This document shows, in pieces, positions 2,825-36,700 of a stretch of 64,000 bases of DNA; within the stretch, counting starts at the first letter, position 1; each line of letters opens with the position of its first letter. The notes beneath the pieces are model-generated. The model was not told where the DNA came from. It searched no databases and was given only the letters and a program-made list of their open reading frames with translations. Where the stretch lies: contig NC_134033.1 of NCBI RefSeq assembly GCF_964204645.1, positions 10,982,655-11,046,654 on the forward strand, read 5' to 3'. The position numbers and the translations under genes were made by a program. The DNA comes from Tubulanus polymorphus (Eukaryota > Animalia > Nemertea).

Positions 2825-3130
2825 TGGAGACAAACGCCAAACGAATCATCCTCAGCCTCCACTTCTAGTGCCGCTGCCGCTGCTGCTGCTGCTACTGCCG
2901 CTGCTGCCGTTGCATCGTCCACATCCGCGCCTTCCGTTGCTTCTACTTCTACTACTACCACTACCACGCCTCGGTATACGCCGGTCGTGGCGGCCGCGGC
3001 GGCTAGTGCCCCCGGCGGCGTCGCGACGCTTAATCATCACCACGGCACATTCCCGCCGACGCCGTCGCCAACGGCCGGCTATATCGATGGTTATCGGCTA
3101 CGATTTACATCGCCGGAAATGTTGCCTTAT
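2825..3130 (+). CDS. mbl: Muscleblind candidate exon (Ala/Ser/Thr-rich, phase 0-0, 102 codons: WRQTPNESS...FTSPEMLPY), probably an alternative cassette
   Basis: Acceptor ttttttcttacag|2825, donor TAT|gtgagt at 3131; GC-rich open frame in AT-rich background; 306 nt keeps frame with exon 5530. Confidence 0.6.
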
Positions 3131-8700: not shown

Positions 8701-9645
8701 ATTTAGGTAGGGTTTCGTGCTGTGGTAGAGTCTCGCAATGGTTCCTCAGGTTAAAGTCCCTGCCGATTGAGAGTAGCAATCCGGGAGATCGCACGCGGGT
8801 CATTAAAACATGCATCAGTGACTTTCTACTAGCGCTCAGATCCCCTTGTCTGCAGTCGATGACAGTCAGAAAAATATATAAATCTGATACATGTAGATAA
8901 CTTTTATGTCTCTCCCACTTATGACAAACAAAATCCAAATCCTTTTACTCCAATATCGTGGAACGTGTGATCCTTAAGAATATTCCATCAAAATGCCATT
9001 TCTTCTATTTCTAATCAACAATGCAATGATTACAAATTTATTCGAGTGTGATCCGACCAACACGTGCGTAATCCGTCAACACTAGGATAAACCGTTCAAC
9101 TTTGGGATAATACCTCTAAAATGGCCCTCCCCGCATAACAACCATGCAGAAGTATTTTACGTATCTCCACAATCGCCACTTTTTAAAACAACAAATGCCA
9201 AGAAAATCACTCCATATAATTAGATTATGTATTTATATTATCGATAACAGTAAAGAATGGTTAGGGTTAGTATAAATCTGAATGATTGTTAGAATACTGA
9301 TAGGTATCTATAATGATCTCCATAGCCACAGTTTATTGGAGATCCCACATAATCTCCGCAGGCACAGGAGATCACATAAACCAACGGATCAATTATTTAG
9401 TTCTAAAGATGGTTTCCACAGATATTTCATTATCGAATATCTAAATAGTTATTATTATAATCATATTATCATTAACATTATTATTATTATTATCATTATT
9501 ATTATTTTTATTATTATTATTATTATTATTATCATTATCAATATTATGATTATCATAATACTTGACATTGCCAAACGACCGGATATTTCCCATCCTAATA
9601 TATATCGTGTTCACTCACATTGTGTATACTACGTGCATTTATTAG

Positions 9646-9882
9646 GTTTGTCGAGAGTTTCAAAGAGGTAGTTGTACTCGTCAGCCTAGTGATTGTCGCT
9701 TTGCGCACCCCCCTGACCATGTACATGTGGACAACGGTGACAACCACGTCACCGTCTGCATGGATTTTATAAAGGGCAAATGTTCGAGAGACTCGTGTCG
9801 CTACTTCCATCCCCCTCCGCACCTCCAAGCTCAGATCAAAGCCACGCAACAACGTGCTACTCTCGCTGCTCAACAAGCCATG
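9646..9882 (+). CDS. mbl: Muscleblind tandem CCCH ZnF3-4 exon: [23 protein letters not shown]...[32 protein letters not shown]...AM
   Basis: ttag|GTT and ATG|gtaggg; 237 nt; Cx7Cx6Cx3H plus Cx7Cx4Cx3H spacing and HPPxHLQAxIKA are diagnostic for the MBNL second finger pair. Confidence 0.97.
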
Positions 9883-11207: not shown

Positions 11208-11459
11208 ATTAAGCATGAACAAACCTAACCCTTTCTGGAATTTGGATTGAATTTATTGTAGAACAGCCATCATAAATGTTCTTTTTTCTTAAAAAGACAG
11301 CTTTTCTTCTAGAGGTGGACACTCATTTCCAAAATAGCATTTAACAACCTTTGAGTAACTGGTCCCCAGATCAGCAGCATCTTCTCAGAATCATAATGAA
11401 GAGATATTGATTATTTTTAACACATTTCCTAAGCTCTCTGATCTGTTACGTATATCAAA

Positions 11460-11485
11460 CTGCTGCTGCTGCTGCTGCTGCTGCT
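11460..11485 (+). repeat. (CTG)8 intronic repeat; also (CTG)6 at 16082-16099 and (CAG)6 at 27966-27983
   Basis: Direct inspection. Confidence 0.95.
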
Positions 11486-13351
11486 TTCTATCTTGGCCGT
11501 TGTTCGCGTACATGCGCTTCTTTCATTTCGAGCTGTCTGATTATTGTAGATATCGCTCTATTTGTGAAATTAGTGAATTAGTTATAGTGGAGAAAGGTTT
11601 GCAACTTTTGAAAAAAAGCCTCTCATGTTTCATTTCATTTTCTAACCCTTTTATTTTCAACACTGTTTCTATTTGTGAAACAAAAGAGATGTTTTTTATG
11701 AGCTTTCGATTTTGTGACCAATTGTAGAAACGCAGTTAGGAGGATCAATATTTGCAAATTTTACAAACACGGAGTTCGCAAAAATTTCGACAATCGAATG
11801 CTCCTAAAAACGCTTGAGGATATCATAACTGACCAATCAAAATTCATAAACAACCAGTCATATTGTTATAGATGATCCTAATGTGTGTTAGGTAAATCTA
11901 GTATATTGAGCTGATTAGTTCATATTGCTGAATCATTGAAGTTATTGAGAATGAGAAGATTGTCATTAGTAATTAATGATAAGTCATTGAGAGTAATCTT
12001 AAATTCATTGGTATAATCGAGATTTATATCAGGTTAGAATCATTAGAATGCTGTCAAAATAAGTAGATATAATTCTAATGGATCCCAGATGAAAAATTCA
12101 GTGTTGAAAAATAGGGTTAGCGCTTCTTTTTTTTTATATAGTTGACGAACTAAGCGTTTTGGACGGTTGACGACGTTTGATGCTCCAACTTTTTTACGTA
12201 TTAAGAATACATATTTATATCTGGTATCAGAGTCTCACATGTCATACAATTTTTTTCCGCGTGTTTTTGAAGGTGTTTCGTTTCATCTGTTCCTAAAAAA
12301 AAAAAACGAATTGTGCAAATATTATTAAATGAACCTAGAATTTGAAAGTGTAATTAACATAGATTTAGGCCACTAGAGAACTCCTCTATATAGTTATTTA
12401 TTAGTTGCTGCTGGACTGGGTTGGGTATTTTTCTGACTCTCCTACTATTTCAGGAGGACTTTGTCCTTCTTTAACTAGTTCTGAAGGTTTAGATGTATAT
12501 ATTGCTCTTTAATGCTCTGCTGTTTTGTGCAAACTTTTAGCTGCCTCGCTCGCTGCTGCGTACAAATGTGTACATTATATATCCATATTAACCGTATATG
12601 AGAAATCGTGAGATACTAGCTAGCTTGTATTTTAGTGTGCTCTGATGCTGCCTTTTCGCTGCGTTCCCCGCCCGCTACATTACGCAAATAAACTCCCCCT
12701 AAAACTGAGTGGCCCCCGAGCTTTAGAAAGTCCTCCTCACTCCGAGCTGAAAGCAATCGCACACGCTTAATCAAAACCCTCATATTCTACGTAGTTCGAC
12801 GCCTATCTTTCAGATCAATCGTTACAAATTTTTGCAATCAACGCTAGCTAGCAACTTTTCTTCCAGAAGTTTTCCGAACATAATTGGAACTCGTAGTTCT
12901 ATCCGCATTACTTGCCTATATCTACGTAACTATTACTCTTTATGTGCGAACTTATCGTCTATTGTGGCATCATCGTTAATTTTCGTTACATCGGCGCTCA
13001 AACATTGTTTCTCCTGCTTTTTGTAGTGCAATGAAAAAGGTTTTCCTGCATTTTCTGTGTTTGTTGAGCTCTTTTTCGTCAGAAATGAAACCAACGAAAT
13101 TAATCTTCGGTAGCCGAATAGAAATTTTTTGGTTTCTATGTAGTTTCAGGTTCAGCTGTATTTGAGATTTTTTTGTGTGATTTTTATGGGAAAAATTTCT
13201 TCTTTTCTTTTTCGTGTCCAACTCACAGACACTTCCCCGAACTCAACCCGTTCGCCGGTTATAATGATAAAAAACTGATGATTAAATTTTTTGAATTTTT
13301 GTTTGTTTCAATATCTCTTACCGTTGTCTCTGCACGACATTTCGTTGACAG

Positions 13352-13578: not shown

Positions 13579-16500
13579 CATGGAGTCAACTCATTCTATC
13601 TCTATTTTACTGTCGTTGAACCTTCTGTGATTGTCTGCCTGCGTTACACGCAAAATGATCAAGACAAAAAAATGAAAGGAATGCCGGGCTAGTTTTAATG
13701 CATATACATATCCACCGTTTACAGGGATGCGAACCTGGTGAAAATCTGGGAATGCCACTTCTGCCATGACGTGAAAACCCCAGTGTCTAAAGGTCAGGGT
13801 CAGTTTCTAGCAGGTTGTTTGATATTCCAATTGTGTGACCATGCTATTTGAAAAATAGTTACCTGGCATAGCTGCTGTGCAACCAGATGCTTTTGCAAAA
13901 GCCTGCTAAGCTTTTCGAATATCAGTGAACTGTAAAGAGTTGCAGCAATTTTTTTTTAATGATACCATAGGACCCAGTTCCAGTGATTTGGGTTGATATG
14001 TGATAAATGAAAATTGGATCCAGTTTCACAATTGTGGGTTAGATTTTACCCTTGGGTCATAATCAGTTCATTTCCAATTCATTTATTTGAACCTCAGACT
14101 GTGGAACTGGCTCCCCATCGTGGTACAGCATTAGCAGTGTTTGTTAATATTTGCTGGCCTGGGTTCGCGTGTGGTGGCAGGGAGTCAGTCTCAGGGTTCA
14201 CATCCTTGCCAATGAAAGATGAAAGCGATATATATGTGTATATATATATGCCTTCCTGTTGGCTGTCTAACTGTCTGCTCTACTGCTATGATACACAAGG
14301 TCATAATCAAGGTCATTTGATCTGTTTCCTGCTTTTTATTCACTGCAGAATTGAATAAATCGAATCTTAATTTTGCCTTTTATTTTTAATCACCAATCAT
14401 CGAATTTATCCAGACTCAAGACAACTTCTTGCATGATCAATACATATATGCATAGGGTAGTTGTGTATACTTTGTTGCTATGTTTGAGAAATGAAATTTG
14501 ACTTCTAGTTCGGTTAAGCACTCAGCTTTTAAACAATTTTTTATCGCATTGAGTTTGTTAGAAATAAGAACGACTGTAAAAATGTGTAAATGAATTATAT
14601 CGGTATTTTTGAAGACATTTAGGACTGGTAATCGTACATGTACACCTAGAAAGACAAGTTACTCGATGATTTGTCTTGAACAAGTCCCACTATTGGATTT
14701 TGGGAAATGAAATGTATCTTAAGCACAAGTTTGAATAGTTGGCTTCGTGCTTGATTCTTTATCAACCGCCAATGTAATTTTTTGAGAAAATGCTTCTTCT
14801 AAAATTGAAGCGAATTCATTTATTTGGTTATCGTATTACTTACTAAAATGGTGGCATCGATGTGGATAGCACTATTGTAAATTCGAAAAATAACCTTATG
14901 GAGGTTAAAGTCTGATGCTTTATGTCCAACAGACTTTTATTGTTCAATTTGATTGCTTGTATCAGGTGGTAATATTTGAAGTAAGTACCATCATCAGGTA
15001 GTTAAAACAACCAAATGATCTTCATGACATCGTTGAACATTTCAAGGTCTAAAATCTAATGGTTGGCTTTTTTTATGAGAAGATAAATAAGTTGGAAATT
15101 TAGAAGCATCTCATTCAGCCCCCGTGGAAGATGACAGTGAGTTCAGAGCAGTCCGTGCTAAGCATTGTCGCGTTCAAAAACAGGTCATGATGGATCAGAA
15201 GACACTTCGAGGTTCTGTGTTTATTCGACTATGAAGTCATTGACTTAGTAAAAGAAGAAACATTTTAACTAGAATCGTAGTGTCACCGAACATAAGCAGA
15301 CTTGTTGTGGCAAAGCCCAATGTGATATAGACATTGGAAATGCATGGTCATGTTCAAAAGAAATGTTCTACACATACAAGCACTCTGATATCAAGCTTTT
15401 GAATATGATGTGCTTGGAATACCAGATGCATTTTTGATATGTGTAATGAGTTTAAGGGGCACTTTATTTTATTTTCTTTCTCAATGCCAATAAGTTTTAG
15501 TTTTGATACGTTCTTGTATTAAGTAGTGGTATGTCTGTTTTTGAAATGCAGGAAAATCTTTTTACCGCTTACTCTTCTAGGAGCAGCCTATCTATACACA
15601 GCCACAAATGTAGCGATTTTAACGTTTTTGAACATCAGTCGAGCGCACTTTTAGGTTACATCTTTCACTTGCAGCTAGCTATCCAATAGAAAAACTTCAT
15701 GGTCCCGTTCTGGTGGTAAAAGCCACTGTTTAAAATGATTTTCTTCCACTTGGCCACTTTGTCAACCGAAAGATTCCATTGGAGCTTCTGAGCAGCTTTT
15801 TAGGGAACGAAACTACGCTGGTGACTCGCTTAAGTTTTCTGCTTTGCCTTGGCTTTGTCTTTGTGTATGTCGATATTAACCTGACTAATAAATATCATTA
15901 TAATTATCAACAATATTGTTACTGTTATGAATAATGAGCTTTTAGTTGATAAGGCATACATTATTGGCCGCTCGCTGCAGCTATAGTTGCATAAGCTATG
16001 CATTGTTTGATGAATCATAATGCTTCAGTGATTAACATATTAAATGGACTTATTACGTATTAACATAACACCTGCTATTCGCTGCTGCTGCTGCTGCTGT
16101 AGATTTTGTAGTGCTTCATCTTGCACAACACTCGCGTCATTTTGTGCCGGACGATTTGAAATACCCGAACATCGATGTCAATTCCCATTTTGGAAGCTAC
16201 TCGTCTTTAGTTTTTTCTAAGCCATTATCATTGGCGTTGGCAGTCGCAACTGTCTTCTTGTCCCTGACAGCAAAGAGCATGTGTGTATATATTTGTATCA
16301 TGAAGTTTTTAACTTTCAGTTTTTGTAAAAGAGACTTGGCACGTGAATGGATGAAGTTCTTTCATGAACCTCTTTACTCTGGTTTTTTTTTTCTTAATGA
16401 CATGTGAAACTTTTAACGGCCATAAATATGTATACATATATATATATTCAATAAATGGAGCATGCGTCTATATGCGTTTCTATAGTTACTATGCTTATTT

Positions 16501-18922
16501 GATTATTATTCATGCCATTGTCATTACCATTACAATTTTACATGTCCTAACCAATCAGCTTCTTGAGTCGTATATAAATATTAAACTAGCTTATTTTTGG
16601 GCACCGGCCTCAGTTTTTTTAATAAAATAGTTCCGACGTGTGTTTTCCTTGCATGTGGATTGTTGAACTGGTGAATGTAACAAACAATGATGAACTCATT
16701 GCCGATGTCAACCCCTCGTAACATCACTCCAACTAGTTCTGGTTAAAGCACATACAATGTATTTGCTGATAAAGAACAAATGTAGGCGATTTTGTTTTTG
16801 AAGCTGATCTGGTGAAAGAGATTTTAAAAGTTACCAATTACCAAATGCACCGTCCTTCCCAGTTAGGTCACGCTATTAGCATTACCGTTTCCATGTCCCT
16901 CCTTACAAGTTACAATTTTTAGTGTGGCCATTCGAAAATTACTTTAGCAACTAAGACAACCTTGAGTATTATAATTTTCTCTCATCATAAGAAATGGATG
17001 AAACATTCAAACCAAACTCTACAACCATCATAGGTTTACCATCATTACTGGCTTCATTTTTAATGTAGTTCTCGAATGCAACTTCCCTATCTTCAGTCAC
17101 TATACACTACTACCTTTGCCACCTCAATCCTGCCTCTTAACAACTTTCCAAACGTTTACTACGTATCTTACCTCTGCCTCTTACAGCCTCTAGGACTTCA
17201 TAATAGCCCTCGCAAATGCGCTCACCGATAATTCAAGTCGATGTTTCATCATTTGTGTTATAATCTGTAAACTGCTATGACGGCCCTTCTCTCGTTTATG
17301 AAATAACTGTCAAACTTTGCAGCATGAATATCATTGAAAAAATTTGAATCATTATTTCTATTGTTATTATCATGATTATTATAATTATTATTATTATCAT
17401 TAGTCGTATAGCCAGGCGCTGGTATCAGTAATCGTATATACCTCACTACCACTTCTATTTCCTTTCTTACAGCAACGTTTCTAAAATATCTTCCTAATTA
17501 CCAAATTAATAGATATCATTCGTTGCTTTGTCGAGGGCCTAGTTTTCTGCATTTTCAACCGATATTTCATTCACAAAATCATTTTTTCAAAAATTTTGGC
17601 ATCTAATTTTTAACTTACAATTTGTGGAAGTCTTTTCAACTGTTTGTATCTCGGTGCACGAATAATTGGTTGAATTTGTTTTTAAAGATGGCTGCTATGG
17701 CAACTCGCACATTCGTCTAGTCTAGTCCACGATCGTTCGATTTGGACGCAGCGCCATTTTCACGTTTGAAACCATTAAAACAGCAATAGATTTTACTTTT
17801 TCAAATATCGAAGAAGATTTATTCAACTGCTTGAATGGGTTAATTTTCATTCGGCAAATTTTTTAGAGTGTGAGACAAGTTCAAATTCATCTCATTGTCT
17901 ATAGTAGTTGTACTGTGCCTGTTATGCTCATCAAAATCTGTCTGCCTAAATTTTTAAAAAACCCATTGAACAATACGACTAAATCAATTTTTCATCGAGA
18001 ACTATTCGCTTATCTTGCATTGTGTATTACCACCATTATAATTATGATTATTATTATCATTATTGTTATTATTATTATTGATATTCGATTTTAGTGTTTG
18101 TAGTCTATATATATGATGGCTTTCCATGTGACGCTATTGCATTCTAGATATACGTTTGTGTAGGCATATTCTTGAACCCTGTCAGCGATAACATTACCTA
18201 CTATTTTTCTTCCGGCAAGAAATCCACCAATTTTTCTATTAAGAAAAAAAATCTCAGCCGTCATTCATAATTTCTCGCCTAATTTCCAAATTTATAATTT
18301 GTAATTTGTAACTCAAAATTTTATCGAAATTTACTCCATATTGAAATTACATTCTACCACATTCTTTTGGTTTTTTACTTCAAAATCTGATTTGGAATTT
18401 ATAACCGACCTCATGGCATAGATAGATAAGCAGAATAAACGACAGTACTGCTATCAACACTGAAGATGGGTCTCTTTCTGAGATAGAACTTTTGCCGAAT
18501 GGACATATATATATGTATATATATTGCCCTGTCTACACTAGAGAGTGAATATGGATTTAGAGTATTTTATACTAATGAAACTGAGGACTCGATCAATCCA
18601 CATTCATTTAATCCACAAGACCACCTAGTCTCAATCAGTCCTAGAGTAAATAGGAACATCTTGCTTGCCCATATATGTTAATGTATGTACTGGTGCATTG
18701 CAGAGGCGTCTCGTGTAGACATAAATTCATTCTGAATTTCGTTTGAATGAATTATGCTTGAAAAATCTTCCAAAATCTCTAGTATAGATATGCGGCATTT
18801 GTATCTCGATGCGATATGAAAACTACCGTAATTTCACCCTCTATTTTCTGTTTAACAAACAAACGAACGATCAAAATAGAAATAAAATATCTACTGACTG
18901 GAAACCAAAATTATGCATGTAG

Positions 18923-19067
18923 ATCTGTTACAACTACTTATTAATATTGGTGCTTTTCTTTTTATTTTTTATTTCCCACGATGCATTGCTGCTTGCTGTT
19001 GTCATGTGCCGCCAACCCTGCCATGCTATTGGCCAATTGCGATCATGTGCTCTGCATAACTAATTAG
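18923..19067 (+). promoter_or_regulatory. AG-exclusion zone / distant branch point with ~9 YGCY (MBNL) motifs upstream of the NLS exon
   Basis: No AG between 18923 and 19065; TTAAT at 18941-18945 followed by a pyrimidine tract, then TGCT/TGCC/CGCC cluster. Confidence 0.8.
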
Positions 19068-25665: not shown

Positions 25666-25831
25666 GGAATGACTGGAATGCCAGGAATGGTACCGATGAT
25701 GAAACGGCCAGCAGTAGCGGATGCAAAGAGTGGTCTACCAGTTTACCAACCGGCGTCTAACGTCGCCGCCTATCAACAAGCGTTAGCCGTTGCGCAATTG
25801 CAACAAGGGCAAGGATATGTACCGGTCTCGT
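25666..25831 (+). CDS. mbl: Muscleblind exon GMTGMPGMVPMMKRPAVADAKSGLPVYQP...GYVPVS (ends phase 1)
   Basis: attag|GGA and T|gtaagt; 166 nt; KRPA motif and YQQALA motif typical of MBNL C-terminal region. Confidence 0.92.
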
Positions 25832-27818: not shown

Positions 27819-29792
27819 TTAGCGACACGAGAAAATGTTTAATGAGGCAGTAGTTTGAATTTGGCCCATGGAATAGCAACATCCAATATGAACACCTAGG
27901 GCCTCACTATGTTACACGCTGTTGCTCTTGCAGAGAATATATTCGCTGCTACGTGAAGATAATAGCAGCAGCAGCAGCAGCAGCCGGGAGCTCTAAAAAC
28001 ACTCTTTTAGAAAATCGAAAGAATATATTTCTGCGTTCATAAAGGTTTCAAATACGTATGAGTATTCAATAACTCTATAGATTCCCCTTGAAATACTCTA
28101 CTAGAAAGTATTCGAACATACTTTCGATCTATCGTTGGTCAATAGGCGGCAATCTAATCTTGGAACTCGGTTATTTTCACTCCGTAGATTCAGTCATTGC
28201 AGAGACAGGATCCGGTGACCGATTCACTATGAGTAAACCACACGCGTCAAACTTTCCAACAAATTCGGCCGATTATTCACTATTCAAGTGGGTTGATGTT
28301 GGTAACCGAATAACTGCCGGTTACCGACGGTTACCGATGTGATGCCGAGCTGAAGATGAAATTTGACGCGTCGTGCCTCAATAATTTATGACTCGCGACG
28401 CATTCAACAGGAGTCAGTTTCATCGGCGATGATGACATATTAGGGAATTTAATACTTGTTATGAGGTGCTCGGTATTCACTGTATGAGCGTCTTGTATGA
28501 TTTTTCCAACAGACAAACGACATCTAGTTTCATAGAGTGCCGTAGCATGAAATTATAAGTGAAATGCTGTGGTAATTCGGGTTTGTAGTTTATGCTGTTC
28601 TAAGAGACCGATCCTTGTTGAAAGTTGCCGAGTGGATTGTAATTCAGGGGCTCGCTGAGGGCTGTTTCTGCTCCAAACACATGGCAGGCATATAGACATA
28701 CAGATATAAGATCCAGTTTTATTTTGTAGCCACTTCCTTCTTGGCGTTTAAATCTGGGGATTTACGAAAAAAAAGATTACAAATCTGCTATTCCACTTGT
28801 GGATCCACCAATCAGCTTTTAATGGACATCAATGCTGCATTTCTTTTTTACGTATGAAAAGGTCATTGTTTAGTTTATGCTGAGGCATGATTCGTCTAAT
28901 TCTGGGTAAAAATTAGCTGAATTTCCTTAGAGTGTCGCGGGAGCAGCATCTAGTGGGATAACCCGGTCGCATAGCGGGATAGTGCATTGCTGTATCGATG
29001 CAATTCCTATAATAAAGTCTCTGACGATACAATCCAATCATGAAACCACCGGTTAGATTCAATCCTGCCGCTGCCGGTGCATGATTTATTTTTCGTGTGA
29101 AATCGTTTTTTAAGTAAGGCAGTAATTAATCATAGTATCTCCAGAGCGCCAAGGAGCATTACGCGTTCCGCTCGGCGTGAAGGTGCGACTGCTCTTCAGA
29201 CTCAAATTTGATTAAAATCGTCTCCCGTTTGCTGTCATCGCTGTCTGCCGTAATAACTTATTGATAAATAAGAAACAATGTGTTCAGACAGATTTATTCG
29301 CGATCACTCTCTTTTCGGTCATGTGTCTGCTTCAGCGGCGGTTGCCGTCGACAACGATGAATCAATCGAGATTTTAATGCGTATCGCGCGCGTGCAAAAT
29401 GAAACCGGATTATAACCTGATGATGAAATAATTTCTTTTCCGATTCCATTTTGAAATTGTTACTTTTGAAATATCGAAATTTAACGATCCTACGATCATT
29501 AATGATCATATGAATATTAAACCTATCGGAAAAAGATCATTAGCGATCATTAACAATTCATCGCAGCTTGTCCAGTTCAGATAAGGTACTCACAAATTAC
29601 CCTCTAACATCACAACTTCTGCATGAATTGAAAATTATTTAAGTTTTTGAAGGCAATATCCATCATTGCGATCGTTTCCGGCCTTTTCGCCCCATTTGTT
29701 ACGTACATCAAATGTAGAGTCTTTTAAATTAGTCATTTAATCAGTTCGTATTCTTCTGATCGAGTTCATAGATGGTTTAGAAATCGAGAAAG

Positions 29793-30083
29793 TTATGGAC
29801 GTAAAACTGATGGCTGAAATTAATGTTTATGCTCTGTGTTTTTTCTCTTTCATAAACTCACAAAAATCGCACACCTATAAAACACTCGCGTGTGTGTGTG
29901 TGTTCACTGCTTGTCTCTACCTACCACATATACCACTGCATGCAACGCCTCCTAACACTATTCGCTCGCCACTGCTGCTTTCTCGACCACTACCAAAATA
30001 CTCGGGGTGCACCGACTGACCTCACTTGCCTGTGCTTGCTGCCGTTTTGCACACATACCGCGCAACACCACGCACACCAACAG
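29793..30083 (+). promoter_or_regulatory. 289-nt AG-exclusion zone with ~11 YGCY motifs and a TGCATG upstream of the frame-switch exon
   Basis: No AG between 29793 and 30081; candidate branch points TTAAT (~29820), CTAAC (~29952), CTGAC (~30016). Confidence 0.75.
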
Positions 30084-30199
30084 ACCCCACGACTGCCACC
30101 GCCTTGCTTTCGGGACAGACTTCACCGGTAACTGGTAGCACGGTTCAGCTTACCCACCATCACAATGCTAGCGTCCAATATTTTGACGAAAAAAGTCAG
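30084..30199 (+). CDS. mbl: Muscleblind frame-switch cassette exon (Y)PTTATALLSGQ...VQYFDEKSQ, phase 1 to 0; alternative donor ends exon at 30205 (+VQ)
   Basis: First AG after a 289-nt AG-free zone; open in the incoming phase-1 frame; donors CAG|gtacag (30200) and CAG|gtatcg (30206); 116 or 122 nt puts exon 32939 into the zinc-finger frame. Confidence 0.8.
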
Positions 30200-31440
30200 G
30201 TACAGGTATCGCTTTAACACGCCAAACGAGTTCCCACCAAACGTCTTAATTAGGTTTTTTTTCTGAAACACTTCACTGCTGAGGTCATACAACGCGATAG
30301 AGTACCTAGTCAATCAAATTATTTTGTCTCCAGAATTTAGATATTCCAAACTATCTTACTTTGTGTTTGGTATAGTTTTCATCGATAATTGATTTACTTA
30401 TTTACCTAGGAGAAAGTATGTTAGATTTTAATTGAAATATAAAAGAAGCAGAGGTAACTGGCAAACCTCACTTGCCACGAGGGAAATCCTCGATTGTGAT
30501 AGCAAGTTAGTCCTCATTTCTGGACAGCCTTACGATCGTCAGCACAAGGCAAGACCCCTGCATGAAAACCCCAGCAGTCGAAGTGTTAAGAATGAAACCA
30601 CATGCAATCAAGGTTTTCAATTACTGATTTCAAATACTTTTTTTCCACTTTCGAAACTTACATTACTCTATATTGTTAGTTCCACTTCAAATAGATTTGC
30701 ATAGCTAGAATGTTCTAAGACCTTTGGTGGGAACGCAAGCTTACATGAAGATTACAGGATCTGGATATGACTTCCTTTGATTTCGGATTTTGTATTTGAA
30801 ATCTCGGTTCTCAATTAGATTCAATCATCTCGGTGAATGGAAACTTCATGCATTTGTTTGTATTTGTAATTGTGGTGTTGGATGCTAACACCCTTTGTAT
30901 CGGTAACTCATACTCTTTCAATATCGATGACTTTACAATCATCGCTGAAATTGGAGAGTTTTAGATATCAACCCTGAGAACAATATTTGATACTGGGTCA
31001 AAATTCAATACCTAGGTGTGGGCAAATTATGATATATACCAAGGAACATTGTTGCTGTTCCCCAAGTTTGAGTGTGGTGGTTATTCTACTAATATAAACC
31101 ATTATTATTGCGGTATTCATAATGAGTTACTCGATGCATTGGGTTACTTTTATAAACTCATTCCCAGATTCACGAAAACGTTTTGCCAAATTCATAATTT
31201 GTTCAATTATACCAAACACAAATCAATCTATTCTTAAACATTTTCGTGAAAACTGAGACAAACAAGTTTTTCATTTCAAATTAATCCTTAACAGTTTATC
31301 AAATATTCCTTGCACAAAAGCATTACTTATTGATGCCCTCTCACAAAATGGCCTCAGAAATAATAGAATAATAATAACTCCTGTCTTGTGTGTTATACTA
31401 ATTTTGATATATTAACGAAACCCTTCGCTTTGCTACGCAT

Positions 31441-31457
31441 TGCTGCCCCCTGGTGGC
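31441..31457 (-). promoter_or_regulatory. CTCF consensus-like motif (GCCACCAGGGGGCAGCA on - strand)
   Basis: Close match to the bilaterian CTCF core; weaker matches at ~44028 and ~63740. Confidence 0.5.
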
Positions 31458-32938
31458 TGGTTCTAACCTTACCCACAACTGTTTGTCACACTAATGCACA
31501 TAGCTTGCTGCACGCCTTACTACATTCCAAAATTAGCGGATATACTTTTTGCATAAGCCAGGTCTGTTTATGCCGAAGAAGCAGCACCTGAACCAACGGA
31601 AAATATATAGATATCTGTTTGGATAATATTAATAAAATAGGTCGATAGAATAGATATACAGATTTTATCCTGCTAAACGCTAAACGCTGTTCCACTCGAG
31701 TGCACTTATTTTTTTTTTCCTGATGTCAAAGTCCTGATCGAGGTCGACTGATTGCAACTAACACCTTTTCCATGTTGCATAGGAATCTCAGGAGGTGTTC
31801 AACTTGCGGATCTCATCTGGAAAGCATCGTTCAAAATTTTTAAAGCTTCAAATTGTACTGATTGAATTTCTTGAGAGCGTGTCGTGCCGTGGAGTGTTTA
31901 TAAGGGAGTTTGATGTTTGTTTGATAAGAGGCGGAATCAAATATCCAGTAGGAAGGGGCATAGTATGCGCTGTATCTCGCTGTCTCAAATTTAGAGGAAA
32001 GATTTTTTGTCCACCATGCCACCAGCTATCCCCACAGTATAGATTAATACTAAGATTAGTTCATCTTCACTGGAACTGCGGCAAGTAAGGATCAACAAGC
32101 GGCCTTCAAAATCTTCTTCATTTCAGAACTCAAAATAATCCAGTTCTAAATTGTTTCTAAATGAACAAATTTTGACCCAAAAAATGCCGGCTGGTGGGAT
32201 AGCTGCGTTTGAGGCGGGATAGCTGTGTTTGAGGGAAGCCTGTCAATTCCAATCAGTGATTTCCATACCCAAAAATTGTATATGAAAATCATGATGATTA
32301 AGTTCCATTCACAAGTGAAGTACAGTTACAGTTTGAAGGTATTGATCGAAATTTGAGTTGGTTTGGCTGTTTAATATCTCACTACAGCCACTAGGCAGAT
32401 TCTTCACACTTGCTACAGTAGACTTGTAGGTATCTGATTCAAACGGTAAAAGGGAAATGTGAAGTCATGGCCTGCAGCAATATGTGTCATAGTGACTACA
32501 ACATCGTGGAAGGTTTATATCAGAACAAAATTCACTGTGAAATATTCTTTGTGCTAATAACATGTTTGCAGCCATATTGGAACCAGAAATTTCGTTAAGA
32601 TAAATTATTTTGAGGGATTTGGGGATTTGTGCCCATTTGCACAGTCTGGGCTGATGGCCCAAAGTGTTAAAACTGATCTGAAGTTATTAGATAGGATAAG
32701 AAGTAAGAAAAGCTAAGACTGGTCTTAAATCTTACTAAAAGTTAAAACATGTAAACTCCACTGAGAAACTAGTCTCCTGGGCCTAATTCTGTATGGTCCA
32801 TTTCCAAAACTGATCTCAGTTGTTACTTTTAGCCCATATACCGGTACATATAACAGCCCATCTATTACATTAACCCTGGTAGTTTTGTAAAATGTATTCA
32901 GTTATATGATTTCCGATTTATATTTCTATTTTCTATAG

Positions 32939-33023
32939 TTACTGGACACCATCCCGGTGTGCCGCGATTTTAAGGCTGGCCAGTGTTTGCGGCCACAATG
33001 CAAGTACGTTCACCTAGTTGAAG
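32939..33023 (+). CDS. mbl: Muscleblind dual-frame exon: phase 1 gives (F)TGHHPGVPRF* (TAA 32971-32973); phase 0 gives LLDTIPVCRDFKAGQCLRPQCKYVHLVE (CCCH finger)
   Basis: ttttctatag|TT and AAG|gtaagt; both frames give recognisable Muscleblind motifs. Confidence 0.92.
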
Positions 33024-33425
33024 GTAAGTGATTATTCTGGATAGATATGTTTACCTTAAGTTCTAAGGTTGATACATTTGTTTCTACGTCATTTTTGGTC
33101 TGAATTCTGAGGCCTGTAGCTTCTTAAAGGCTTGATGGGGGTATACTCTGGAAAGGGATCGTTCATGAAGGAACATATCAAGTAGATCTTTTGATGAATC
33201 AATTGTCAGGCAAACGCTGAAACTGTTGTGCATATTTATGATTATTGCAAGGTCATCCGTTTGTGTATTTGTTCATCACAGATGTTGATAATCGAAATTG
33301 TCAGATTGTGAAGCATTCGCATGCGCGATCATTGTGTCCCTGGATTCCCGGTTTTCCTAAAAAGAAAAATGTCGAACAAAAGGTTATGAGATAATTTTGA
33401 TAATAATGTTCTTTTCTTTCGGCAG

Positions 33426-33547
33426 ATTACGTTGAAGTTATGGATGGTAAAGTTACTGTGTGTCGCGATGCGGCTAAAGGAAAATGCACTCGACCGATGT
33501 GTAGATATTACCATATTCCTGCGGTAATGCCCCACATAATTCTGTGA
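33426..33547 (+). CDS. mbl: Muscleblind last coding exon (D)YVEVMDGKVTVCRDAAKGKCTRPMCRYYHIPAVMPHIIL* (CCCH finger)
   Basis: ttctttcggcag|AT, phase 1 matches the donor at 33024; Cx7Cx4Cx3H; TGA 33545-33547. Confidence 0.93.
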
Positions 33548-33694
33548 CTTCTGCAACCGTTCGTCATATCAATATTACTGAGATGATATAGGTGGCAGCA
33601 GCAGCACACAGGATATTCATTACACGACGACTATGATCTCTGCGCGAAAAAATACGTATGGATATATATGTATAATATATATATATGTATACCA

Positions 33695-33726
<32 letters not shown>

Positions 33727-36700
33727 TGATATTAAGATGGTTTATAATAATACTTAAGTATCGTATATCGATTGCGTGTTCATAAAGATTTGATAAATAC
33801 TACTAAGACAAGGCTAATGCCAGTTCGTATTCTGATGTCTACTTGGCCATTCAGCGAATTCTCAAGCGCCACCTCTTGGAAGAACAGTCCAATGTTTAAG
33901 AAAACTTCTATATCCACATCTGGAACTAACCTATACATTTATTCATTCGACTAGTTTAAGAGAACGGCGCTTTTTTTAGGAAGGACGACTGTCTGAATTT
34001 TTTCTAAATCGAGTGGCTGAATTTTTTAGCAACTTCATCATTTGAACAAATGACGAAATTAGGTTTTTGTAATTTTTTCTATGAGAGCTAAGGGAAAAAG
34101 GTTGACGCGATGGAACCATAGCTTATCGGAGTGAAGTAACTCTTCATTTCAGCTCACTATCATTTTGAGTGAAATATAATCGGAATTATATTTTCGGAAT
34201 ATTTGAATCTATGTCCAACGAGTTATCTTAACTGTTCAATTCAAAATTTCTTCATTTTCAATTAATCATTTAATGCTTGTTTGGATTTTTTATACAGTGC
34301 ATTTGTTCTCATCTTTAAAACTAGTATTTAATGTTAATAGAACTGAAGAAAAATTGACTCCTCGAACTAGATTTCAACTAATTTATTCCTAAAAGTATAT
34401 CTTCCGACAAAAGACAACTAGACTAGTTTTATGAAAATTCTATGATACAACAAAATTCAACGCTGCAAACTTTTTTTTGAAATATTTTTCTAGATAGACT
34501 TACTCGCTCCGATTGTTATTTAAATGTGATAAAATTAACGTTCTTTCCAACTCGTCCTTTTGAATTTTTCATACTCGTATTTATTTTCTTATTTGTGAAA
34601 AGAAAAAAGAATATGTTCAATCAATGCTGAAACTGGTTTTGTAAATTGTGCACGCGTTGATTTACACGCGATAAGAAAGCGAGGAATCGGTATCAGTGAC
34701 AGACGGATTTATGTATAAAAATGGAAATATTCAGCTGAAAAGTCGATGGGAATTATGAATTGTCAAAATAAGTGTGTAGTTTATAAGATTAGATTCTTAG
34801 GTTGCCTAGCAACCGGCCCTGAATTGTGATCACATGATCTGAAACAGAAATTATTATCCAATCAGAAATGGGTATATATCGAAATATTCCACTCATTCAC
34901 TGTGTTGACATAGTCAACTAGAGCTGGGCCTGGGCGCTATACACATCAGAGCCTGCGCGCTGTACACATCAGAGCCTGCGCGCATAGTTATGACTTCTTT
35001 ATTGTCAGGATTAAGATTGGTCTTAATTTGTTAGGGATTTGTAGATGGCGTAAATTTGGTTCAAACCAAACCAAAAGTCTTTTTATGGAATCGAAATGAG
35101 CTAGGATCGGTCTTGAGTTTTAAGTCGTGACTGTGTAAACTGAGCTTTAGGCATCAAATGCACCGTAGCGCTTGTGGCTTTCGAATTCGTGCTGGGAAGA
35201 AATTTGTATTTTTAGAATCGACAGTCTATTCGAGGTAGAGACGAGATGAATGAGTGTACGTTTTCAACCACAGTAGAATACCAAATTTGTCTTCCTTTTT
35301 AAAAAAAAAGAAAATTGCGTTGCATGACTAGTGCCAGATGCGTATGTTGCTTGTATATTCTTTTCGTATCGGTATATCAATAGTTTATTGACATAAATCG
35401 ACGTGTAGAAAATCTTTGTGTTCATCTGTTATATACATAAAAAATCTCGCATTGTCAAATTCTGCGGTTTATATCGCATGAATCGCAAAAGTACCACTAC
35501 CACGCCATTAGCACCACATTCGCTGCTTAAATGCGCCAAAAATGGCCACGCTTCGGGCGCGGTATAGTGCCGAGATACCACACATCGCAATGAAGTATGT
35601 CTAAGCAAATTTTTTCAATCCAGTCGACTCGCGATTTGAAATTGATGTTCTATTTTCTCTCTCCATATTAAAACAAGAATTTAACGTATTGACTTATATG
35701 TAAAGTTCATGATTTTTATAACGAACTCTGGTGCTCTCTGAAGTGATGCATTTATAAAATTTCTAACATTTTTTCCGAGCACTAAATTCTTCATGTATCT
35801 AGGCATCGAGTCATTCGCAAACGAATATTTTACCGCGTTAATTGCTGCAGTGCAAATAATGTCCATGCAGTTTCTGCAAATCAGGAAAAAAATATGTTTG
35901 AAACATTTATGAAAATTCAATCGCTCGTTGATGAGGGGATATTTACCTGCCCGATCGTGCCTGCCTTCTGGTAGTGGGAAAAAAATCAGTTATGAATTTA
36001 GCCAGTGAATTTCGGAATTGTGAGATGACTCAAAGCAACAAGTCTGCGCTTCTAGGTCTGTACCGATTACAATCGCTAAGAAAAACATAAGTCGTGATTA
36101 CATGTGCTGCCCCCTATTGATTACCGTGGAAACCAATTGAATCCGCAGCCCTCTATTGATTATATGAGCGATCGATGTGTTGCCCCTATTGATTTCCATG
36201 GTAACCAAAATGTTGGTTACCCCGACGACCGCATCAGTGTTGGTTATTATAATATTGTACGAGTGCTAAAAAGTTAGTAGTTATCGAATTAGTAAATAAG
36301 TTTTTAATTAATCGATTAATTGTATCTAATTATTATAATTTAATTAAGTAATTAATTAGTGTAAAATAATTGAAAAAAAACGAGGAAAATGCTCTGTGTG
36401 TATTGAATATAGTCGAACGTGTTTGTATGAGCCGTTAATATTTAACAGACACGTGGATCCGTCGTGAATTATGAGAAAATGTGCCATAAAAATCGCGTGA
36501 ACGCCATCTATTAGTAGTGAAATGTATCACATCGGCGTAACGCGATTGTAGATATTACGATTGTGCTATTGTTTCATTCTTGTGAATAAGAAAATTTTAC
36601 AACTTTGCTAATTAGTGTATCTTTTTAATAAGCAAACGGATGATTATCAATTGATTTTAATTATTTCGCGATCTTAAGAAATTTTTCTTGTCTTTTTTTT

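Follow-up and report, generated by a model that had tools for sequence, protein, structure and literature searches.

The 64,000-nucleotide (nt) stretch analysed here (the window; positions 10,982,655 to 11,046,654 of contig NC_134033.1 of the nemertean Tubulanus polymorphus) very likely holds the 3' end of a lophotrochozoan-type muscleblind (mbl/MBNL) gene, and with it an old alternative-splicing module that protostomes share. In this module the use of a single small cassette exon would decide which of two frames is read in the exon that follows it. With the cassette skipped, the exon at 32939–33023 (positions are those of the window throughout) would be read in phase 1, and translation would end after 11 residues in the MblC-type tail FTGHHPGVPRF, leaving the remainder of this exon and the next one as 3' untranslated region (3'UTR). 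With the cassette included, the frame would shift, the same bases would start a zinc finger (finger 5), and translation would continue through a further finger (finger 6) in 33426–33547. Inclusion would therefore give the protein a third tandem CCCH module of the MBNL type.

Two readings of one exon

The elements of the frame switch are as follows.

25666–25831, + strand: linker exon of the MblC type, 166 nt, with MKRP and YQQAL motifs; common 5' partner of all three splice paths
30084–30199, + strand: frame-switch cassette exon, 116 nt (3n+2), preceded by ag and followed by gtacag; 38 codons ending in ..HNASVQYFDEKSQ
32939–33023, + strand: dual-coding exon, 85 nt, followed by gtaagt; phase 0 encodes zinc finger 5 (Cx7Cx4Cx3H), phase 1 the tail (F)TGHHPGVPRF-stop
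32939–32973, + strand: the 35 nt that are overlapped by both frames; the TAA at 32971–32973 sits 50 nt 5' of the last exon junction
33426–33547, + strand: coding part of the terminal exon; encodes zinc finger 6, the linker between the two fingers and the C-terminus ..YYHIPAVMPHIIL-stop; 3'UTR in the short isoform

A previous reading of the letters, made without database searches (the sequence-only reading), had proposed this switch, and the junctions that it predicted agree with our translations. The linker exon, which was said to end in phase 1, holds 55 codons and one spare T, and is flanked by ag and gtaagt. When it is joined directly to 32939, the spare T and the following TT give F, and the frame then continues as TGHHPGVPRF to the TAA. 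When the cassette is included, the spare nucleotide and its 116 nt make up 39 codons, and 32939 is read in phase 0 as LLDTIPVCRDFKAGQCLRPQCKYVHLVE (LLDTIPVCRDF...), giving two CCCH fingers by way of 33426–33547. An alternative cassette donor 6 nt downstream (30205, followed by gtatcg) leaves the frame unchanged.

The acceptor at 32939 is preceded by a clean pyrimidine tract, and the dual-coding exon looks constitutive; its 3' end, which the sequence-only reading had not given, is 33023. The spare G of this exon and the sequence from 33426 onward read D-YVEVMDGKVTVCRDAAKGKCTRPMCRYYHIPAVMPHIIL-stop, with the stop codon at 33545–33547. The coding end previously placed at 33547 is correct, since two orthologous mRNAs finish in the same way, with ..YYHLPIIPHLLV-stop (L011) and ..YYHIPILPQLLL-stop. 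No coding-looking open reading frame (ORF) was found 3' of 33547, and 33426–33547 thus fits a terminal exon. A strict scan for further exons, based on splice sites and ORFs, returned the dual-coding exon alone.

The linker exon could also be joined from 25831 to the last exon at 33426 in frame (T+AT = Y), and the product would have finger 6 only. The GenBank model P0013 on locus L010 (5001–11364) has this linker-to-last-exon structure, though the L010 genome contains an intact finger 5 exon. The form may be genuine, or it may be an artefact of the gene model.

Conservation of both readings

Selection on the two frames was examined at the nucleotide level in six sequences: the window, the genomes of the pearl oyster Pinctada imbricata (L009) and the army ant Eciton burchellii (L012), the genome L010, and the mRNAs L011 and L013. 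In all of them, that is at five loci besides the window, the tail and the LLDT.PVC.DF finger start lie on the same nucleotides. The dual-coding exon is 85 nt long in all six, with GT right after base 85 in the three other genomes and the junction confirmed by the two mRNAs.

As a measure of synonymous constraint, we took pairs of species with the same amino acid at a finger-frame position and scored how often the codon was identical too. Over the overlapped codons 1–11 this identity was 83% (123/149), compared to 49% (67/137) in the rest of the dual-coding exon and 36% (118/324) in the finger 6 exon. The contrast is strong by a Fisher test (p = 3e-20); however, because species pairs are not independent, it is the size of the effect and not the p value that counts. 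The overlap scored highest of 47 sliding 11-codon windows. The first 11 codons after the next acceptor reached only 0.28, which means that closeness to a 3' splice site fails to account for the constraint. Likewise, 26 of the 35 bases in the overlap are invariant in the six species, versus 14 of 49 in the remainder of the exon. Residue 9 of the finger frame varies (R, Q or K), yet the third base of its codon is always A or C, which is what the arginine of the tail requires. In simulations that fixed the finger protein and left synonymous codons free, the tail motif arose with a probability of 1e-4 to 6e-4 per lineage; it is present in 6/6 of the species examined. The finger frame, for its part, runs 170 nt past the tail stop with all zinc ligands intact.

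The locus thus has the features of a dual-coding exon: the alternative exon upstream is not a multiple of three in length, and both frames bear signs of purifying selection. The proposal that both frames are under selection held at the codon level for 32939–32973 across the six species, in which synonymous sites are frozen only under the tail. By this comparison, the 35 shared bases appear to have kept both readings since a time before the split of molluscs and arthropods.

A predicted third tandem finger module

The sequence-only reading described two intact Cx7Cx4Cx3H fingers, and profile searches support this. The finger 5 and finger 6 exons score 27.7 and 42.0 bits against zf-CCCH_10, both at or above the Pfam gathering cut-off of 27, and all eight zinc ligands are present. 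The linker between the fingers, LVEDYVEVMDGKVTV, has about 15 residues, as in tandem CCCH fingers. Since the pair in the window spans an intron, fold tests were run on a contiguous orthologue from the mRNA L011 (~88% identical). This pair aligns end to end with the solved tandem fingers of MBNL1 and MBNL2, with E values of 1e-14 (3d2q, 2e5s and 3d2n) and ~40% identity. An AlphaFold model built from 22 orthologues had a predicted local distance difference test score (pLDDT) of 76. The ten best fold matches of the model were all MBNL tandem fingers, with a template modelling (TM) score of 0.74 and a root-mean-square deviation of 2.1 Å to 3d2s_A, while the next match had an E value of 0.6. The extra pair is thus predicted to be an MBNL-type tandem CCCH finger.

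The window also contains the canonical second pair of the gene.

9646–9882, + strand: 237-nt exon (phase 0 to 0) of the canonical second tandem zinc finger, found by a CCCH scan; zf-CCCH_10 101 bits

This exon shares 78% identity with the second tandem finger of muscleblind-like isoform X8 of Lineus longissimus and 71% with that of a scorpion, versus 44% with the C-terminal pair of the scorpion. A search of the T. polymorphus genome placed the first coding exon 25 kilobases (kb) 5' of the window; it starts MAMVSPT.., includes ..KDSRWLTLEVCREYQRNKC.. and ends ..CCFDSIK. The gene thus has the arrangement of muscleblind/MBNL, with an N-terminal tandem CCCH pair that a large intron interrupts after ..DSIK, a second pair in a single exon, and, 3' of these fingers, a linker exon with the (F/M)KRP and YQQAL..QLQQ motifs. 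Because the canonical second pair sits at 9646–9882 and the first lies upstream of the window, the pair at 32939–33547 is the third tandem module. The LLDT(L/I)PVC motif, previously given as the opening of the insect second finger pair, therefore opens a third one, and the word "second" would fit only those isoforms that skip 9646–9882.

One more exon lies between the second finger pair and the linker.

19068/19071–19133: exon-5-like exon with a NAGNAG tandem acceptor (19068 or 19071); its product is QPVVEVLKGKKRTLDPADEIVL

Lineus and oysters have an orthologous ..PQVVEVLKGKKRPLD.., and the acceptor in the window has 9 YGCY motifs in the 150 nt around it.

Short and long isoforms in other animals

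With the linker exon as query, phmmer returned 55 matches, and those with a named source are muscleblind proteins. The tail, x(T/A)GH.P.(V/L/M)(P/Q)RF-stop, ends 19 of the proteins collected. Named sources of the tail are the nemertean Lineus longissimus, the brachiopod Lingula anatina, the limpet Patella vulgata and the tick Rhipicephalus appendiculatus, and several transcript-derived proteins carry it as well.

The mRNA L011, a 1376-nt metatranscriptome contig, translates exactly to the short isoform, with the linker joined directly to the dual-coding exon (..PVT followed by ITGHTPGVPRF-stop). In the other frame it holds an intact finger 5 and finger 6 behind the tail stop, up to the C-terminus given above. 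L013, a contig from an RNA run, likewise has the short tail and, behind the stop, an intact finger 5–6 ORF; here a 23-residue insert separates the linker from the tail, and L013 is hence not a direct join. Short-tail mRNAs thus exist in relatives, and L011 demonstrates the skip path. Because the finger 5–6 ORF is intact in the 3'UTR of both L011 and L013, it must be translated from another isoform. The insert of L013 (about 1430–1500), when read in the finger frame, ends ..AAMTYY just 5' of LLDT. It looks like a version of the cassette with a length of 3n that keeps the tail frame, perhaps through an alternative donor.

Searches with the C-terminal region, started from two matches, returned 44 and 72 proteins with the linker, the cassette and fingers 5–6. 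This long form occurs in bivalves (Pinctada, Crassostrea, Magallana, Pecten, Mytilus, Ruditapes and Mercenaria), in the gastropod Patella, in insects (Hymenoptera, Coleoptera, Lepidoptera, Trichoptera, a sand fly from the Diptera, a locust from the Orthoptera and a mayfly) and in two chelicerates, a scorpion and a sea spider. One such protein, P0130, has 357 amino acids on a 2.3-kb contig, and can therefore only derive from spliced RNA.

The residues just before LLDT follow the motif NA..V.Y(F/T)D...Q from molluscs to insects; the window has HNASVQYFDEKSQ and the scorpion NAASVTYCDEKGQ, and the motif is also seen in the sea spider and in bivalves. This shared motif identifies 30084–30199 as the orthologous cassette and 30199 as its conserved donor. 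The exon directly 5' of the dual-coding exon measures 116, 107, 113 and 74 nt in four genomes (the acceptor in the ant is uncertain), each 2 mod 3. The idea that one small 3n+2 cassette toggles the frame is thus supported by its lengths and by a C-terminal motif kept from molluscs to insects. Some annotated isoforms reach the finger frame in another way, directly from a phase-0 exon that ends ..RTDRLE.

The RefSeq models of many species (bivalves, insects and chelicerates) already hold both isoform classes. A per-ORF annotation was earlier expected to miss the overlap; P0013 and P0032 do mis-model the locus, and exemplify what single-isoform or per-ORF annotation pipelines make of it. In P0032 (Sinanodonta woodiana, KAL3846594.1) the deposited model reads the third frame of the finger 5 exon (NCWTPSQCAEIL..). 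The deposited model P0125 (Eciton burchellii) is a chimera with unrelated sequence.

Sequence context of the cassette

The cassette acceptor follows an unusual intronic segment.

29792–30081, + strand: AG-free zone of 290 nt with a YGCY cluster, 5' of the cassette acceptor; longest of the 3104 AG-free runs in the window

This zone carries 11 YGCY motifs in 150 nt (mean 1.6, standard deviation 1.7), and the region 5' of the cassette falls in the top 1.7% of 300-nt segments of the window for YGCY. In Pinctada the corresponding run is the 2nd longest of 2453, and in L010 it is the longest of 729. As judged from these features, the zone is probably a regulated 3' splice site with a distant branch point, and its YGCY content suggests that the cassette may be under the control of Mbl itself.

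Unusually long AG-free runs precede each of three candidate alternative exons in the gene: 9448–9643 (196 nt) before the second finger pair, 18922–19065 (144 nt) before the exon-5-like exon and 29792–30081 (290 nt) before the cassette. This suggests that the three exons share a distant-branch-point style of regulation. The strongest YGCY clusters of the window lie in muscleblind introns, at 2861–3010, 15967–16116, 12541–12690 and 11416–11565, with 17, 11, 10 and 10 motifs per 150 nt (mean 1.6), and could be platforms for Mbl binding. In the intron after the cassette, a short repeat at 30363–30398 is covered 145–178x in the assembly-source contigs versus ~30x around it, and one contig joins 30401 back to 29199.

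Weighing the evidence

Conservation of the first 35 bases might reflect a function of the RNA, for instance as a splicing enhancer, a binding site for Mbl or a structural element at the regulated 3' splice site, with the tail a tolerated by-product. The overlap does lie directly behind the acceptor and contains a YGCY motif (TGCC) within GGTGTGCCG, and synonymous constraint is common in alternative exons. However, the constraint ends at the stop codon of the tail, no such constraint is seen behind the next acceptor, and the third base at finger residue 9 is held to A or C in a manner that preserves the tail arginine. In addition, Drosophila MblC was reported to be the most active and most conserved isoform (PMC2238819). 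We therefore consider an RNA-level explanation quite unlikely. It is also conceivable that only the finger isoform matters, and that skipping is unproductive splicing, in which a premature stop leads to mRNA decay and so to control of dose. Skipping does place a stop codon 5' of an exon junction, and autoregulatory splicing is known in muscleblind genes. The stop, however, lies exactly 50 nt before the last junction in 6/6 species, which is at or under the usual 50–55 nt limit for decay; short-tail mRNAs are abundant enough to have been assembled in two unrelated RNA data sets, and the tail peptide itself is conserved. This makes decay as the sole role of skipping very improbable.

It is similarly hard to credit that one of the two paths is dead in T. 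polymorphus, with the cassette or fingers 5–6 as relics and only the short isoform made, or the reverse. The pyrimidine tract of the cassette acceptor is poor, both of its donors are weak, and the sequencing runs for the species hold no RNA. Nonetheless, the eight zinc ligands are intact and both fingers score above the Pfam cut-off, the cassette frame is open and ends in the conserved motif, the splice sites are present and compatible in phase, and the AG-free zone is preserved, as it is in bivalves. We thus favour a working switch between the tail and the finger pair, in which both splice paths would be used in T. polymorphus itself.

Several points nevertheless weigh against the switch or limit parts of it. 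Three sequencing runs cover 28000–33999: X1 is the DNA of the assembly, and X2 and X3 consist of fragmentary contigs that cover introns and have loose ends of the GATC ligation type, and are probably Hi-C. All three are DNA or DNA-like and contain no splice joints, and no RNA run is listed for the species; because only DNA runs exist for this stretch, the claim for the T. polymorphus genome rests on comparison. The nucleotide test covers six sequences only, whose pairs are phylogenetically non-independent. The first finger of the third pair has the spacing Cx7Cx4Cx3H and thereby departs from the Cx7Cx6Cx3H of MBNL fingers 1 and 3. The Cx7Cx4Cx3H spacing is found in both fingers and is constant in 22/22 aligned orthologues, which argues that the shorter first finger is a conserved variant and not a product of decay. 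The third pair may bind RNA, and inclusion of the cassette would then change the binding valency of the protein. Finally, the YGCY enrichment 5' of the cassette is weak and not significant in the other loci (8–27%); for this reason, control of the cassette by Mbl, acting at the YGCY-rich AG-free zone, is put forward only as a hypothesis.

X2 and X3, which come from one sample, differ from the assembly in the introns at 28000–33000 by more than 10 single-nucleotide polymorphisms and five small deletions, including one of 9 nt at 32104. They derive from another individual or haplotype.

Discussion

The isoforms themselves and the MblC tail were already known, and the quantified conservation of two frames on the same bases is a modest new point. 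In Drosophila MblC and the MblC-like proteins of protostomes (Begemann 1997; Vicente-Crespo 2008, PMC2238819), as in the window, a linker exon with YQQAL and (F/M)KRP motifs comes after the fingers and leads into a short tail. The MblC isoform and the FKRP motif were described in 2008, when MblC-like isoforms were found to be the most conserved, from arthropods to nematodes (PMC2238819). The 64-amino-acid MblC-specific region with the FKRP motif in that study fits the linker exon plus the short tail (PMC2238819). That study (PMC2238819) is silent on the fact that the bases of the tail also open a zinc finger when read in another frame.

The same exon order as in the window occurs in the RefSeq X-isoforms of Crassostrea, Pecten, Mytilus, Diachasmimorpha, Xylocopa, Lutzomyia, Tribolium madens, Manduca and Centruroides, and likewise in Nymphon; Drosophila MblF, as cited in PMC3315501, is counted with them. 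In these isoforms the linker is followed by a cassette ending ..Y(F/T)D...Q, by finger 5 with LLDTLPVC.DF and by finger 6 ending ..YYHIP., and they are known as database models only. Irion (2012) describes the canonical second pair in insects and, of MblF, only a divergent second tandem motif (PMC3315501). In full-text literature searches, we found no description of the overlap, of a third tandem finger or of a six-finger Mbl.

Compared to the tandem fingers of MBNL1, fingers 3–4 and 1–2 (PDB 3D2Q, 3D2S, 3D2N, 5U6L and 5U6H), the third pair shares full-length alignment, fold and the length class of the inter-finger linker, but its first finger is two residues shorter (Cx7Cx4Cx3H). A parallel is also found in vertebrates, in which two 2026 preprints place MBNL1 and MBNL2 among the genes with conserved, alternatively spliced dual-coding regions (bioRxiv 10.64898/2026.05.28.727796 and 10.64898/2026.02.24.707805). 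The two systems belong to the same family, and each has an alternative exon close to the 3' end that changes the frame of the coding sequence downstream, with both frames kept across a clade. In the vertebrate genes, however, the choice is between two unstructured C-termini and does not involve a folded RNA-binding module. One could go further, and suppose that the cassette and the dual-coding exon form an ancestral valency switch of protostomes, or possibly of bilaterians, in which Mbl acts at the YGCY-rich AG-free zone to set the ratio of four-finger proteins with the MblC tail to six-finger proteins, and that the dual-coding C-terminus of vertebrate MBNL1/2 is a remnant left after the loss of fingers 5–6. 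This wider scenario is speculative, and we think it rather unlikely.

Muscleblind/MBNL proteins are master regulators of alternative splicing and are central to myotonic dystrophy, and their action depends on the number of tandem finger modules that contact RNA. At this locus a single small cassette would pick either the ancestral MblC-type protein or one with an extra, predicted RNA-binding module. The locus also appears to be a clean natural case of a long-lived dual-coding exon in which one of the frames encodes a folded domain, and it points to a class of six-finger Mbl isoforms that has been mostly ignored in experimental work.

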